A stretch of DNA of 63,271 nt, counting the filler, from Reticulomyxa filosa (lineage: Eukaryota; Protista; Foraminifera), in NCBI GenBank assembly GCA_000512085.1. It is 17 parts of 17 records of this genome, joined end to end, with 100 filler letters (N's around TTAATTAATTAA, not from the genome) between each part and the next. Parts side by side here need not be neighbours in the genome. Positions count along the whole stretch, not along the records: positions 37,486 to 44,042 come from ASPP01003664.1; 16 more parts are not named here. One strand, written 5' to 3'. A program made the translations under genes and the position numbers. The notes under the pieces are model-generated. The model was given only the letters and a program-made list of their open reading frames with translations, did no database searches and had not been told where the DNA came from. This document shows positions 3,487-45,093 of the stretch, piece by piece (the first letter of the stretch is position 1; the number at the start of each line of letters is the position of its first letter).

Positions 3487-4417
3487 CCAAGTTGTTCTCG
3501 CCCAAATCTTTTATGTAATAACACCGATACGACTAAACCACTCACACCAGCCGAGGCATGAATCACAATACCCCCTGCGAAATCTTCAAATCCCAATTTG
3601 CACAGCCATCCCCTTCTATTCATCGTCACACAGTCAAAAATACTTACAATATTTTTTGGATTTTTCTAACTTTTAAACAAAAAAAAAATTCTAAAGAAAT
3701 TTCTCCCTCTCCTCGCCCCCCCTTTTTTTTTTTTTGTAACATACTGAATTTTTGGAGGTGTACCAAAAAAAAAAAAAAAATGTACCTTCCCGACTTAACG
3801 GATGCCAACTCCAATGGGCCAGTGGGTAATACACCAAAATTGGCCAAACAATCAAAAAAATCACAACGGACTTGAAACTCATTCGCTCGACCCACGAACC
3901 ACTTACTATCAACGGCGTCATTAATGCAAACATCATTTGAAAACTCGCAAACAAAACCGCTGGAATGTTTGGAGCTGTCTCTTGATGATACGGTTTCTTT
4001 ATCGACACATTTGTAAAAAATACATATTCGAACGGATCACCTATCAACCCCAAATCTCCCAAACTCCTTCCGAATGTCAATCCAAATCCGCATATTATCC
4101 ATAACAATGCACCAATTGTCATTCCTAAAAATGTTTGTGCTAACATTGACAATGCATTCTTTTCTCGGATTAAACCTGCCTGAGTCAATCCCATTCCTGG
4201 TGTCTGCAACATCACCAACGTCGTTGCAAACAGCCTATTTTGTTGATTTTTGTTATGGTTATGTGATGTGTGGTCACTTTTTTTTATTTGCATGTTTTTC
4301 CCCCCTCCTCAGCTCTACTTGTTTAAGTTTATCGTTTGAAGCTGATTTGATAGAGCAAAAAAATTTTGCAGTTTCTCACATGTAAGCTGTATCTGCGGTA
4401 TTTATTTCACTGGACAT
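3487..4417 (-). CDS. amt: Ammonium transporter (Amt/MEP family), 5' part, at least 3 exons; 3' end truncated at contig end
   Basis: Exon 1 MSSEINTADTAYM (4417-4380). Exon 2 LFATTLVMLQTPGMGLTQAGLIREKN...FQMMFALMTPLIVSGSWVERM...VYYPLAHWSW. Exon 3 GWLCKLGFEDFAGGIVIHASAG carries the DFAGG...H motif. GT-AG introns. Confidence 0.93.
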
Positions 4418-38678: not shown

Positions 38679-39675
38679 TTAATTTTTTTGGAGTTTATAG
38701 CCAAAGAAAGTATGTGAAGACCCAATTTCAGATTGAATGTGTTTATGGTGATTAATAAAATCGGCAACATATTGTGGCGACGTAGCAATCATAGCGTTGA
38801 CAGTGTGCAGCGCATGTTTCAATTCGTCAGGAGGGGCCAAAGCAAATGTAGAGTGTCCAGCCCTCCAAGCAAAATCGTTGATACCTTTCAAATCGTAATA
38901 AACATCCTCTTTCACATGAATCTCACAAATCCTTTCGCTTCGAACATCTTCAAATTTGCAATCTTCCAACATTTTCTTCATGTAATCTTTTTTTGGCAAT
39001 CGTTTGCATGCTTGTGCAGACGCTATGTACATACATATTTTTTAACGATCTATCATACGTATAAAATATAAATATTATATATTTACACATATATGTATAT
39101 ACCTTGGGGAATGAATTGACTAAACCAGAGGCCAGACAATACTTGTTCGATTGCACAAAAATTGATTAAGACTACCGAGCACTTGTCATTGTTTAAACAG
39201 CGATAAAATTGTTGCAACACTTTTCGGGTGTTTGTAAATCCAGAGGTTATACTGGATTCCGTTTCTAAATGGTGTATCACTTGGTTCAACATTATACAGT
39301 CAAATGCCTCGTCATCAAACGGCAATCGATCACTCAGTAAATTGCCTTGTGTGATTTGCAACACCTTCGACTCGATTAGTGATTGATTCTTTTTCATGCA
39401 CTCGTTGATCATTGACTTGTTCAGTTCGATTGCGTACATACGCCGAACTCCGCAATTGTGCAATACTTGCAAATAATTACCCGTTCCACAACCTGCGTCC
39501 AACACTTTCAACTCCTCAATCGGCTTATTTTTCTCGCTGACAACAAGTTTAGCGTATCTCGGATTTGGGAGACACCAACGGGCCTTCTTGACATGTCATA
39601 GCAAGAAGCACTTTTATGATAATCATAGTAATTTGAAAAGTGTCGTCGAATGACAATATGAAGTCTTGAAGACAT
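38679..39675 (-). CDS. Class I SAM-dependent methyltransferase (UbiE/Methyltransf_11-like), 2 exons, possible mitochondrial presequence
   Basis: Motif I VLDAGCGTGNY; LPFDDEAFDCIMLNQVIHHL. The N-terminus MSSRLHIVIRRHFS joins after a 1-nt homopolymer frameshift near 39548. Intron ~39102-39021. Confidence 0.85.
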
Positions 39676-39886: not shown

Positions 39887-40637
39887 TTAACTTTTGATTT
39901 CATTCGGACTTGCGAAGTGATTAAAACGGATGATATCACTCAAGCAGAAATAAAAAAAAAAAGTGAAATTAAATAAATTTAAAAAAATACACAGCATACG
40001 CCCGTTACAACAAAGCCCCTGCCAAAGAGGGCTCAAATTTTTTTTTTGGACTCTGGCCCACCTCTTTTGTAAGTCTTTTTTGGTCCAATTGATCTGAAAC
40101 TTATCCGAGTAATTTCGATGGATGTCATCCCACTTTTCACCAAATTGCTTTACCAAATCTTCCAGCAACTGTTGGTCGTGTGCACTCCATTGACGGCGAG
40201 GTGCCCTCTGTCTTCTCTGAGATGTGACTCCTGGCATTGCTTTTTCCGTGGTGATGGGATTAAACGTGAACGACATCGAGTTGGTGGCTGTGTACGTCGA
40301 CTCCACATCGCTGTCCATCTCATAATCATTATCGTTACCGGTATCAAGCGCAAAATCTTTCGCACGTTCAATGTCAATGTCATTTACATGCAGCTCCAAG
40401 TCGTCTGCATCGCCCAGCGACAAGTTGTCATTCCTCGTCGTCATCACACTCGAAGTAGCCGCATGCAGGGCATTGCCAGGTTCGGACAGCGCTTGGCAAG
40501 GGGACAAAGTAGTATACGGAGAAACTCCAAACTTTTTCAAGCTAGCTCCACAATGGACTGATTCCTTTCCAGCACTCGGGACGCGAACGCTATTTTTTGA
40601 TGCTGAGCGAGCTGGCTGTTGATATATTAAGAAATTG

Positions 40638-40683
<46 letters not shown>

Positions 40684-41949
40684 GACAAAAGGAAAGAAAT
40701 GATATAAAACTTAACGGTAACCAAATTAGTGAAAAGAGAAACAGGTGTCTTGTTAACAAATGACGCCTTTTTATTTTCGATGTTTTCATTGTTATTATTG
40801 TTGTTGCTGTTGTTATTGTTGTGCATGTCATTGTTGCCATTGATAACATTGTTGTTAATGTTGTTGTTGTTGTTGTTGATATTATTGTTGTTATTATTGC
40901 TATTATTATTGCTGTTGCCATTGCTGTTCGTAGAATGTTCAAGGAACTGGATTCGCTGTTTCAAATGATCGATCTTGTCGTTTTTGTACTCTTGCATGCG
41001 ACGACAAAACAGAGGCCACAGATCGTCGTAGAACCTGGATATGAATTCGGTCAAGTTCAAGCGATTCCAAAACAGGAAGCGGTCGCTGATGTTGTTATCC
41101 ACAGGCCATTGTTGTGCCGCCGCAGTCACACTGTTGCAGGTCACCATGAAGCAGTACTGTTTATGCTTTGCGGAGAGCACCCCCCACAGGTCTCTAACCT
41201 GAGGTTCGCTCACTTTCGTATTTTTCCTTTTTTTTTTTTTAAAAAAAAAAAAAGGGGTCACAATTCAATTTTAAAAAAAACCATTCAAACACATTTACAT
41301 ATTATATATATATATATATATATATAATATGTAAATGTGTTTGAATGAATTTAGTCTTTCGATACCTGTATTGCTTGACCTGTACCATCCCCTCGCCCTT
41401 TTCTTTATGGAACAGCAACAGATCAATTCCCCCGTCTTTGGTCTTGCCAACGTGCTCCACTTCGTATCCAAGACACGTGAAGATGCACCCGACGAACAGT
41501 TCAAACTCCGTCGCCGACATCTTGTTTTCCGCAAAGTCGAGCAGCGTTTTACACTTTTGCTCGTGCTTCCTCTGATCCTCCAGCACGAGGTGCTCGTAGT
41601 GAGTCGACTTCAACTTCAACTCGTTTGCTTCCGATAACAACACACTAATCTTGTTCTCGTACCATTCTTTCATTTCCTGGCACTTCTGTGTCCATTCTTT
41701 TGTCCTTTGATGGATGTTCGCCTCGTGGCTTCGACATACGCTCTCAAGCTGCTTCACCACGTTCCTTAACATGTCGTTCACTTTTTGCTGCTCTTCAAAC
41801 GCTATCCCAAAATCGGGAATTGATCCGTAACGACGGTCCGAGTTCGGCGTGTCGCTGCGGTAGCTTGCTGCCGAACTTGCTGCGTTACCTTTCGGACTTT
41901 GATTTCCTCCACCTCCATAACCATGAAATCCATCAAATATGTTACTCAT
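39887..41949 (-). CDS. Coiled-coil + Mrr-like restriction-endonuclease domain + C-terminal Myb/SANT domain protein, 3 exons
   Basis: Exon 1 (41949-41366): MSATEFELFVGCIFTCLGYEVEHVGKTKDGGIDLLL...MVQVKQYR. Exon 2 (41226-~40716): KNTKVSEPQVRDLWGVL...CFMVTCNSVTAAAQQW. Exon 3 (from 40615): RRQWSAHDQQLLEDLVKQFGEKWDDI...TKKDLQKRW. Both GT-AG junctions are in frame. The exact stop is uncertain because of a poly-A run. Confidence 0.82.
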
Positions 41950-42366
41950 CTTCCAACCTTTTTTTGAATAATGATAATAAACAATACAACAAAAATGAGC
42001 GCCCGAAATGTTCAAGAGCTTTCTTCTTTTTTAGTTCCAGAAAGCGACCAAGAGAGATTCCTGAAATACACTAATTTTTACATTTTTAAAGGTTAGTCAC
42101 GAAATAAAAATTAGAATTGTAATCTTTTTTGGTCTTTTTTGAATTGTTGTGCACTAATTTTTTAACTTCTTATGACAAGCTTAAAATACTGCTTTTATTT
42201 TTATTGTTATTTGTCAGATTTATTTTGTTTCTTAGGGGTGCGCGTAACGTTTCTCCTAGAAACAAACCAAACCAGACGAACCAAAAAAAAACCACAAGAT
42301 AAACTTAGGTTTTTTTAGGACTTTGAACATTTTATCTACTATTAATTGAATTGGAGCCCGACAGCA

Positions 42367-43912
42367 ATGTATGATGAGATAAAAATCTTCGCAATCGATC
42401 GTTCGTCACCGGCTGAGTTGCAAGAGCAAGGACTGGGCAATTACACCAAGCTTGCGGTTGTGAAAGAGTTGCAAAAGTATGGAGACACAGAAGAATTGGA
42501 AAAGTTGTTGCAAGCACAAAACACATTGACATTTTCAGCTGTCTTTGACGAGCCCATCGGATTTTATTTGATCAAATGTTTCTTGGAAACTGAGAATTCC
42601 ATTGACAAAGTGAAGTATACTTTCCCTCCGTATTTCGTTGCTGTGACAACACATTTTTTTTTGGTGCGGCAGTGTTTTCATTTGACACGCTTGTGTGTAT
42701 GGTGTGTATCTATCTATCTACCTCTCAACAAAAGGCGATATTCGTCAAAGACGTCCAAGTGTACAAGTCTTTGCAAGACCGAGCTGCTCGCTTGCACATT
42801 GCAAAAAAAATCTACAATCGTTTTTGTACCTCTGAATCTTGTCTTCCAAAAAAAGAGCTTTCCGTATTCGATACCAATGTATACATATATATATTATATA
42901 AATATAAATATGTATACTTATTTAAAATAAGGAGAACAATAATAACAATAATAATAATAATAATGACACTTTGAGCAAAAAGGGATACTTTTTTTTTTTT
43001 AAGTTGCCAAGAGTTTCCTCTTTTGTACATGAATTTTTTTTTTTTTTTTGAAAAAAAAAAAAAATGAATAAAGAGTGAAAATGGGCAAAAAGAAAACATG
43101 TCACGAGCGTTGGAAGAACTTATGACGCTGGACTACAAGTGCAACGAGAGTCATTTGAGGGGACCAAGTTCGCAAACGCGAGGAGCGAGCGACATCATTT
43201 GTAGTGATAACGACGACAACAATAACAACAAAGAAAACGCAAACAGTGGCAACAAGAGCATGTTGAAAAAGAGATTCAATCCCGATATGCACAAGGTCAG
43301 TATCACCGCAACGGCGAGCTCTCAGCCAACTGCTAGTTCCAACATCAGTGGGACTGATGGCACATTATCCTTGCTCACCGAAGAAAGCAACATCATTGGT
43401 GTTCATGGACGGCCTATTGAACGACTTAAGGTGTTTTTTTTTAATAAATAAATAAAAAAAAAAAAAAAAGAAAGAAATAAAAAAATTATCAAAAAAAAAA
43501 AAAAAAGAAACAAATTGAAGAAAAGGCAGCTTCAATCGACTTGTTTGATGAGATTGTAAACGAAGTGGTTCAAGAGTTAACATTGGACGTATTTCCGCGA
43601 TTTTGCATGTCAAAGTGGTACAAATTGTACATTAAGTGTAAGTCGATAGAAAAAAGCACTGTGAGTACCAAAGACTTCCATCAGCTGCATACTCTTGGCA
43701 GAGGCGCGTTCGGCTCTGTCCATGCATGCAAAAAAAAGTCCACTGGAAAATTGTACGCCATGAAACAGCTGAACAAACGCCGGATTCAAGAAACTGAAAG
43801 TGCCATCGCCGTCAACGCAGAGCGAAACTTTTTAGCTTTAATGAAAAGCAGATTTGTTACCACTTTGAAATACGCATTTATGGACGATAACACATTGTTT
43901 TTGATGTTTTAG
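42367..43912 (+). CDS. GRK: G protein-coupled receptor kinase (RGS-homology + AGC kinase domain), 3'-partial
   Basis: RH domain LTFSAVFDEPIGFYLIKCFL...AIFVKDVQVYK...IAKKIYNRF...DVFPRFCMS. Kinase DFHQLHTLGRGAFGSVHACKKKSTGKLYAMKQLNKRRI...FVTTLKYAF. Confidence 0.88.
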
Positions 43913-45093
43913 TACTTTATTATTATTATTCATCTATTTTTTTTTTTTTTTTGTATACGTTTTTTTGCAAGAGGAACAAAAAAAAAAAAAAAAAAAGGAT
44001 TAATACCCAAAGTTTCAAATCTGCAAAAAAAAAAAAAAAAAANNNNNNNNNNNNNNNNNNNNNNNNNNNNNNNNNNNNNNNNNNNNTTAATTAATTAANN
44101 NNNNNNNNNNNNNNNNNNNNNNNNNNNNNNNNNNNNNNNNNNATTTCAAATTTCAAAATATTTTTAAGAAATATTATTTTTATCTTCAGTGCTTAAAACT
44201 TTTTTAAAAAATGTGTAATGAATGTACTTTTGTTTGAACGTATGATAAATATATTTTAAATATAAGTAATTAAACAAATTATATTTTCTTTAATTAAAAA
44301 CATATTATGAAATATATAAAAATAAAAATTTTCAATTTTTTATTATTTCATTTTTTCATTTATATAATATCTAGTGTCAAAAAATATGCACATACATGAC
44401 ACTTTTTAAAAAGAATAATAATTTTGGCTGAAATAACAAAAATTTCACAGATTTTGCAGAAATTGATATTTTAAATTAAAATATTTCATTAATAACATTA
44501 CCAGATTGTACAAATAATTATTTAAAAAAAATGCCTTTTAACAGATAATGTGATGATTTTGTCAAATCGATGAAGTAACAAAATTAAAAAAGATTATCTA
44601 ACTTATGACTTTTGAATTTTTTTTATTGAATACTTCTGAATTTCTGGTTTCTTGGAAAATATTCAGTTATTCGTAAAACGTTACTGTTCAGAAATGCTTA
44701 GATATCAACAACAAAAATAAATCAAAAGTACAATGACAATAATAATACATCTGTTTCATGTCGTGTATTTCATATTGATATTTTTTATATCCTTTTTTTG
44801 ATTCAATAAAGAAAGTGATTAAAATCTTCAATTATTAATATTATTTTGTGATATTATGAAAACTAAGAATATAAATCATTTTGCTTTTCTTCTTTTTCTA
44901 AGGTAGAATACATGTAGTTGTGCGGATATATATATTTACACCTGATTTCATTACATTCTGCGCTTAATAAATATTTTTCTTTTCGGCTTCAAATTTTGTA
45001 TGAACGTTTTTTAGCAAGAAATAACAAAATTGAAACTTATGCAGTCGTTGGAATCAGTTTATTTGTTTTAACCCCCTTGCTCCACAACATTTA

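Follow-up and report, generated by a model that had tools for sequence, protein, structure and literature searches.

The DNA analysed here is a window of 63,271 nucleotides from the foraminifer Reticulomyxa filosa, the window being the whole stretch, along which all positions are counted. At 39887-41949 on the minus strand, a 6,557-bp contig within this window carries a gene of three exons that encodes a Mrr-type nuclease domain (Mrr_cat) and a C-terminal Myb-like domain. The public record of the gene is ETO33109.1 (RFI_03998), a "hypothetical protein" of 600 amino acids that we call P0001, and UniRef lists it as X6P4V1 with the label "Myb-like domain-containing protein". We consider it almost certain that one gene encodes both domains and that this gene is conserved in Foraminifera. 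Exon-wise searches were done with the exons of the window separately, whereas whole-protein analyses were done with P0001. The gene consists of the following parts.

41366..41949, minus strand: exon 1, with the ATG at 41949; residues 1-194 and 2 bases of codon 195; N-terminal region, coiled coil and first half of Mrr_cat.
41533..41811, minus strand: predicted N-terminal parallel coiled coil, residues ~47-139; contacts in a homodimer prediction and weak coiled-coil Pfam matches.
41097..41526, minus strand: Mrr_cat nuclease domain, residues 142-238, split by intron 1; PF04471, E 1.4e-19.
41500-41502, 41434-41436, 41422-41424, 41380-41382 and 41374-41376, minus strand: putative catalytic codons for the invariant residues E150, D172, D176, Q190 and K192, respectively.
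41227..41365, minus strand: intron 1, GT-AG, 139 nt, phase 2, within the nuclease domain; GT at 41365, AG at 41228-41227.
40716..41226, minus strand: exon 2, with the second half of Mrr_cat, a C-terminal helix and an Asn-rich linker; it ends at 40711 in the public annotation.
40938..41027, minus strand: long helix after the nuclease domain, residues ~262-291; predicted second parallel coiled-coil segment.
40770..40930, minus strand: Asn/Ser-rich low-complexity linker in the exon 2 translation, flagged as a repeat.
40616..40715, or 40590-40710 in the public annotation, minus strand: intron 2, GT-AG and in frame in both versions.
39887..40615, minus strand: exon 3, with an acidic linker, basic arm, Myb-like domain, an uncertain tail of ~50 codons and the stop at 39887.
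40040..40225, minus strand: basic arm and single Myb/SANT-type three-helix domain; PF00249 21.6 bits, family alignment, structural model and Foldseek.

An earlier note on this DNA, written by a model from the sequence alone, had read the locus as one spliced host gene with three exons. The public protein agrees with this reading. A full-library phmmer search with exon 1 returns residues 1-194 of P0001 at 100% identity, the public intron 1 is identical to the one proposed, and the peptides quoted in the note are all present in the exon translations. The codon split across intron 1 (AG|G, with exon 2 starting at 41226) encodes R195. Searched separately, exon 1 matches Pfam Mrr_cat at profile positions 2-57 (E 8e-10, 39.3 bits) and exon 2 at positions 59-99 (E 8.5e-4, 19.9 bits). 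The two matches adjoin on the profile at intron 1; hence, they are two halves of one domain that meet at the proposed junction. Homologues align without gaps over the same site (QYR|KNTKV). As the note had pointed out, the gene appears as three separate entries in the ORF (open reading frame) track, at 41302-42015, 40680-41261 and 39887-40942.

For intron 2, the position first proposed is valid, but the public one is equally so. When P0001 is compared with the window DNA, both versions keep the Myb frame and differ by a few linker residues. Because the region is an unconserved linker, we have no preference between them. The 3' end of the R. filosa gene is uncertain as well: the final ~50 codons (39887-40036) are an open frame downstream of an A10 run (40038-40047) in AT-rich sequence, and the homologues terminate 5-25 residues past the Myb domain. 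An error in homopolymer length, or read-through into the 3' untranslated region, may account for the annotated tail. In G+C content the exons, at 45-51%, stand above the introns and the flanking DNA, at 25-35%.

The assignment of the nuclease domain is robust on several counts. On P0001 the Mrr_cat model reaches 70.7 bits (66-84 bits in homologues), where the curated cut-off of PF04471 is 21 bits. In the Mrr_cat catalytic site, motif II contributes two Asp and motif III a (Q/E)xK (PMC12292046), and P0001 has D172-G-G-I-D176 and Q190-V-K192. Together with E150, the two Asp, Gln and Lys are invariant across 13 aligned family sequences; in twelve bacterial relatives E, D, D and K are invariant too and Q nearly so. 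A search with the family profile recovers LlaBIII (E 2.7e-6), AspBHI and MspJI through their Mrr-like nuclease domains, aligning DGGxD and QxK with MspJI and LlaBIII; a sequence search of the PDB with exon 1 alone gave no match. The AlphaFold (AF2) model of residues 125-290 has a mean predicted local distance difference test score (pLDDT) of 94.4 and adopts the PD-(D/E)xK restriction-endonuclease (REase) fold, with MspJI (E 1.2e-6), AspBHI (8.9e-5) and AF1548 (6.7e-4) as the best Foldseek matches. Both the fold and the D...QxK arrangement had been claimed from the sequence, and both stand. Judging from conserved residues and the model, we think that the Mrr domain is probably catalytically active.

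Two of the families named in the note do not fit. By itself the protein does not qualify as a type IV restriction enzyme, because it comes without a domain that reads modified DNA: no Mrr_N winged helix, SRA-like or similar domain has a Pfam match at E up to 0.1. Fungal Rrg7, against which the note had suggested a phylogeny, does not fit either. PF10356 (RRG7) has no match on P0001, and its matches in homologues (13.9-16.9 bits, E 0.004-0.036) are insignificant and below the cut-off of 22 bits, so that we rejected membership in this family.

At the C-terminus, the structural model shows three helices at model residues 24-37, 41-51 and 58-73, with a pLDDT of ~90 in the core. No family member deviates at W22, W41 or F52, and a W or Y closes helix 3. 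In the family alignment the basic arm (R..RR.W) is invariant too; helix 3 holds an LKD motif, and LKPKL stands at the end. All top Foldseek matches to the model are Myb/SANT domains (the DMAP1 SANT domain, TRF1/TRF2, Trichomonas Myb2 and c-Myb) with probabilities of 0.9-1.0; their E-values exceed 0.1 because the domain is small. We regard DNA binding by this domain as likely, given the model and the conserved positions.

The resemblance to the telobox motif that the note had seen is a mild one. The basic arm, the LKD motif and the best full-length single-domain profile matches, Tbf1 (19.6 bits for the domain, 20.9 for the whole sequence) and TRF1 (17.7 bits for the whole sequence), point in this direction, but these matches are weak (E 0.003-0.03). 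Proteins of the c-Myb type score in the same search through several partial repeats. The domain may thus lean mildly towards the TRF/Tbf1 telomere-binding type, going by profile matches and the model. A target that is specifically telomeric is nevertheless very unlikely in our view. Two further searches added little: a PDB sequence search with the Myb part of P0013 alone gave one chance-level match, and a protein search with exon 3 gave no match within the allowed length range.

R. filosa is not the only carrier of this architecture. About eleven cluster representatives related to it came out of the phmmer search with exon 1, and more followed from two other searches. They have one plan in common: a short N-terminus precedes a coiled coil and Mrr_cat, and a variable linker of low complexity then leads to a basic arm and to the Myb-like domain at the C-terminus (P0004, 619 amino acids; P0008; P0009, 953 amino acids; P0010; P0013; P0028; P0029; P0030; P0032). 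All named members are Foraminifera, namely R. filosa, Bolivina argentea and Nonionella stella (EukProt); the sequences of the latter two presumably stem from the published transcriptomes of PMC8153729. Four metagenomic contigs (L001; L002, 953 amino acids, from TARA; L003; L016) encode Mrr to Myb in one uninterrupted ORF. Hence, the fusion does not depend on the splice model for R. filosa. Another contig, L017, has the full ORF of 619 amino acids with short flanks and without introns, whereas in the related genomic contigs L003 and L016 an N-terminal exon lies ~400 bp from the main ORF; L017 therefore looks like a spliced transcript. Intron 1 of R. filosa is absent from the four homologue contigs examined (L001, L002, L003 and L016), and in L001 (at 3912-4000), L003 and L016 an intron separates the coiled-coil exon from the Mrr domain. 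The search for the architecture elsewhere thus turned up a conserved foraminiferal family instead of a one-off.

One could also argue that the Myb exon is a separate gene in R. filosa, that the fusion is an annotation artefact, or that the sequence is bacterial contamination. The RNA evidence does nothing to oppose this. It comes from one run whose RNA type is a guess, and consists of a single 192-nt Logan contig at 40338-40525, inside exon 3, that spans neither junction. There are also two possible positions for intron 2, and the Myb score is sub-threshold: PF00249 (Myb_DNA-binding) matches exon 3 with E 2.4e-4 and 21.6 bits, under the gathering score of 24.4, and P0001 with 19.7 bits, P0009 (27.4 bits) being the sole homologue above the cut-off. 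The C-terminal Myb/SANT domain of the note is hence supported by its three-helix fold but not by its Pfam score in R. filosa. Set against this are the homologues with both domains in single ORFs and a spliceosomal-type intron that splits the Mrr domain where the profile is continuous. Reading through from exon 2 meets a stop at 40680, and the neighbours are an intron-bearing kinase of eukaryotic type and a methyltransferase. A separate gene, an artefact or contamination is therefore hardly credible, and we continue with a single, nuclear-encoded host gene.

Where did the nuclease domain come from? Outside the family, the sequences most closely related to it are small Mrr-type proteins of bacteria (Anaerolineae, Prosthecochloris and metagenomes), and among Atlas structural neighbours with recorded taxa 92-100% of the clusters are bacterial. 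Stand-alone REases such as MBN1261111.1 (Anaerolineae) and WP_041702133.1 (Prosthecochloris) have the motifs in common with the foraminiferal domain at 23-31% identity, but they are 140-310 amino acids long, carry no Myb domain and fall outside the foraminiferal clade. The foraminiferal sequences form one clade with 94% support in the Shimodaira-Hasegawa-like approximate likelihood ratio test (SH-aLRT). This clade has three well-supported subclades, and the partner of R. filosa in the tree is P0005, a relative from metagenomes. A scan of viral contigs found no relatives, and a scan of metagenome contigs only distant bacterial-type Mrr matches with 22-40% identity. Reticulomyxa is known to carry methyltransferases derived from restriction-modification systems (PMC4738411), and 69% of its prokaryote-derived genes contain introns (bioRxiv 10.1101/2023.01.27.525846). 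A prokaryotic origin of the Mrr domain, as the note had proposed, is likely, and lateral capture from bacteria is plausible, with the donor not pinpointed.

The protein is predicted to form a parallel coiled-coil homodimer. For two copies of residues 45-292 the prediction scores 0.63 and the best control 0.00. Proteins solved as pairs attain this mark in 21 of 30 cases, those solved as single chains in none of 23. Between runs at least 96% of contacts coincide, and the pLDDT of the partner is no lower than 87. The predicted contacts are in register and heptad-spaced, over residues ~47-139 and ~262-291, and thus lie on both sides of the nuclease domain. These contacts and the weak Pfam matches listed above support the N-terminal coiled coil read from the sequence. 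The dimer prediction may nevertheless be generic, since coiled coils can score high in this way, and the calibration of the tool is weaker for eukaryotes.

Taken together, these results suggest the following scenario. A foraminiferal ancestor would have captured the catalytic Mrr-type PD-(D/E)xK domain of a small restriction-type protein from bacteria. Stripped of its original targeting context, the domain would now sit between two coiled-coil segments that form a parallel homodimer. A long disordered linker would tether the nuclease to the single C-terminal Myb domain with its basic N-terminal arm. In the nucleus, where we presume the protein to be located, the two Myb domains of the dimer might bind a short, probably repeated, double-stranded DNA motif, and the paired, otherwise non-specific Mrr domains might cut the DNA nearby. 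Recognition and cleavage would thus be divided in a way similar to FokI and MspJI. For this scenario as a whole, mechanism included, we see the chances as even; an active nuclease, DNA binding and cleavage near Myb sites are the steps that we infer. That the protein is a Myb-directed nuclease is a proposal that we make tentatively from sequence and models, and we would put it slightly below an even call.

Several known systems come close to this design. Mrr-like enzymes (E. coli Mrr, MspJI, AspBHI, and the N-terminal nuclease of the type ISP enzymes LlaBIII and LlaGI) have the same PF04471 domain, fold and D...(Q/E)xK arrangement, and in these enzymes, too, the domain cuts without specificity of its own and is directed by a recognition module fused to it. 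The foraminiferal protein differs from them in that it comes without a Mrr_N winged helix, SRA-like reader, helicase or methyltransferase. Instead, coiled coils lie on either side of the nuclease and a long disordered linker leads to a Myb domain of eukaryotic type; the gene is eukaryotic and bears introns. TRF1, TRF2, Taz1 and Tbf1 have the same general layout: a dimerisation region and a flexible linker are followed by one C-terminal Myb domain, which has a basic arm on its N-terminal side and LKD in helix 3, and human TRF1 superposes on the Myb model at 1.2-1.3 A with 28-30% identity. Unlike TRF proteins, the foraminiferal family lacks a TRFH domain. The matches to TRF proteins are weak, c-Myb and SANT domains score similarly, and the LKPKL end is c-Myb-like. 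We know of no TRF protein that carries a nuclease.

A single polypeptide that pairs DNA recognition with a REase-fold cutter is also found in FokI and in the R2 retrotransposon protein, which is targeted by a Myb domain and zinc fingers. Both are weak fold matches of the Mrr model, R2 at rank 39, and their REase subfamily is a different one. This raises the question of whether the gene belongs to a mobile element, with a homing-type or transposon nuclease targeted by Myb as in R2 or Harbinger, since a Myb domain next to a restriction-like endonuclease follows the targeting and cleavage logic of R2. We consider this highly improbable, for the following reasons. First, there is no reverse transcriptase or transposase. 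Second, each database cluster is found on only one or two contigs, and an inverted-repeat scan lists no gene-flanking repeats within its 200-nt limit. Third, members fall into distinct subclades and are under strong purifying selection across species. Fourth, the neighbouring genes are ordinary and unrelated.

A more serious competitor of the Myb-directed nuclease is a Mrr_cat domain that no longer cuts and serves as a DNA-binding or protein-interaction module in a dimeric Myb/SANT chromatin or transcription factor. Several observations weigh against our proposal and for this alternative. PF22722 (NA-iREase1, a family named for inactive REases) matches the family above its cut-off of 27, with 31.8-47.6 bits (R. 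filosa 31.8). REase-fold domains have lost catalysis in other proteins; the non-catalytic Rpb5 N-terminal domain, which has the same fold, is among the fold matches of the Mrr model. SANT-type domains that bind histones and not DNA, such as that of DMAP1, fit the Myb model as well as DNA-binding Myb domains do. Finally, a constitutive nuclear nuclease would be hazardous.

Nevertheless, we think that loss of cleavage is unlikely, even if far from negligible. The five catalytic-site residues are invariant in all 13 aligned sequences and thus in three subclades. The Mrr domain is also the most constrained part of the protein, with a ratio of nonsynonymous to synonymous substitution rates (dN/dS) of 0.04-0.06, compared to 0.17-0.28 in the linker and 0.18-0.23 in the Myb domain; these values are rough because dS is near saturation, which takes some force from the argument. 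Mrr_cat far outscores NA-iREase1, and most bacterial Mrr clusters, including those of active type, match both. The family would not qualify for NA-iREase1 in any case, as the catalytic residues are kept and a Pfam scan finds no NACHT domain. NACHT-associated PF22722 and fungal Rrg7 belong to the same REase clan and occur in eukaryotes or conflict systems.

Literature searches returned no description of a protein that combines Mrr with Myb or of the foraminiferal family, as the note had supposed, but the protein itself is already public as an unstudied entry. What is new is therefore the architecture and not the domains. If the nuclease is active, a eukaryotic lineage has re-aimed a bacterial restriction-nuclease module, with a Myb domain and a coiled-coil dimeriser in place of the bacterial context, and strong purifying selection would have maintained this module in all the members found, which span three subclades. 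It would be a compact natural design for recognition and dimeric cleavage, and a candidate for a role in endoreplication or genome elimination, aspects of foraminiferal genome dynamics that are still poorly understood. If it is inactive, we would still be looking at a laterally acquired REase fold put to chromatin use. One could go further and propose that Foraminifera direct a dimeric, Myb-guided nuclease of restriction type at defined, repeated sites in their own nuclear DNA and cleave them, for instance in large-scale genome elimination and remodelling during the life cycle or in telomere or ribosomal DNA processing. This is a long shot, but if true the protein would be a natural eukaryotic counterpart of engineered enzymes that join a DNA-binding domain to a nuclease.

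The two neighbouring genes are the following.

39083-39511, minus strand: class I S-adenosylmethionine-dependent methyltransferase; Methyltransf_11, E 6e-16.
42346-43912, plus strand: multi-exon protein kinase; Pkinase, E 3e-13.

The upstream exon of the kinase looks RGS/GRK-like, by eye only. The G+C content of the exons of the Mrr-Myb gene (40036-41985) is above that of the coding parts of both neighbours, which is ~33-43% (38686-39585 and 43036-43935).

Some observations concern other members of the family. The linker motifs PSSxLSSAKKR, KxWxxxKF and an acidic DSSLLIDESQSD(D/E) stretch are common to P0004, P0008, P0010, P0013, P0028-P0030 and P0032, all of them outside the R. filosa and P0009/P0011 subclades; in R. 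filosa all three are diverged or absent. The acidic stretch resembles a SUMO-interaction motif. The contig L001 is labelled chicken_3__NODE_20481 (ENA ERZ28548065), an odd label for a foraminifer-like gene, and is AT-rich and intron-bearing with Sel1-repeat neighbours. A profile search with the whole-family alignment gave only two matches and was swamped by low-complexity words. Two matches to 41722-41895 (residues 19-76), P0002 (a giant repeat protein from Steinernema hermaphroditum) and P0012 (metagenomic), were taken as scoring artefacts. Their high scores are sums over 11-31 matching stretches, and P0002 in particular appears spurious because the repeat examined is weak (29% over 41 amino acids) and the score sums 31 repeats.

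Both introns of the R. filosa gene contain a palindrome without spacer. In intron 1 it is near-perfect and 76 nt long (41277-41352, 38-nt arms, 95% complementarity, hairpin fold z -10); in intron 2 it is perfect and 46 nt long (40638-40683, 23-nt arms, 100% complementarity, z -6.9). Hairpin-centred introns may be a general feature of R. filosa or a relic of how the introns originated. Further inverted repeats, mostly of T-run/A-run type, lie in non-coding DNA near the kinase gene (42879-42917, 43022-43072 and 43937-43996).

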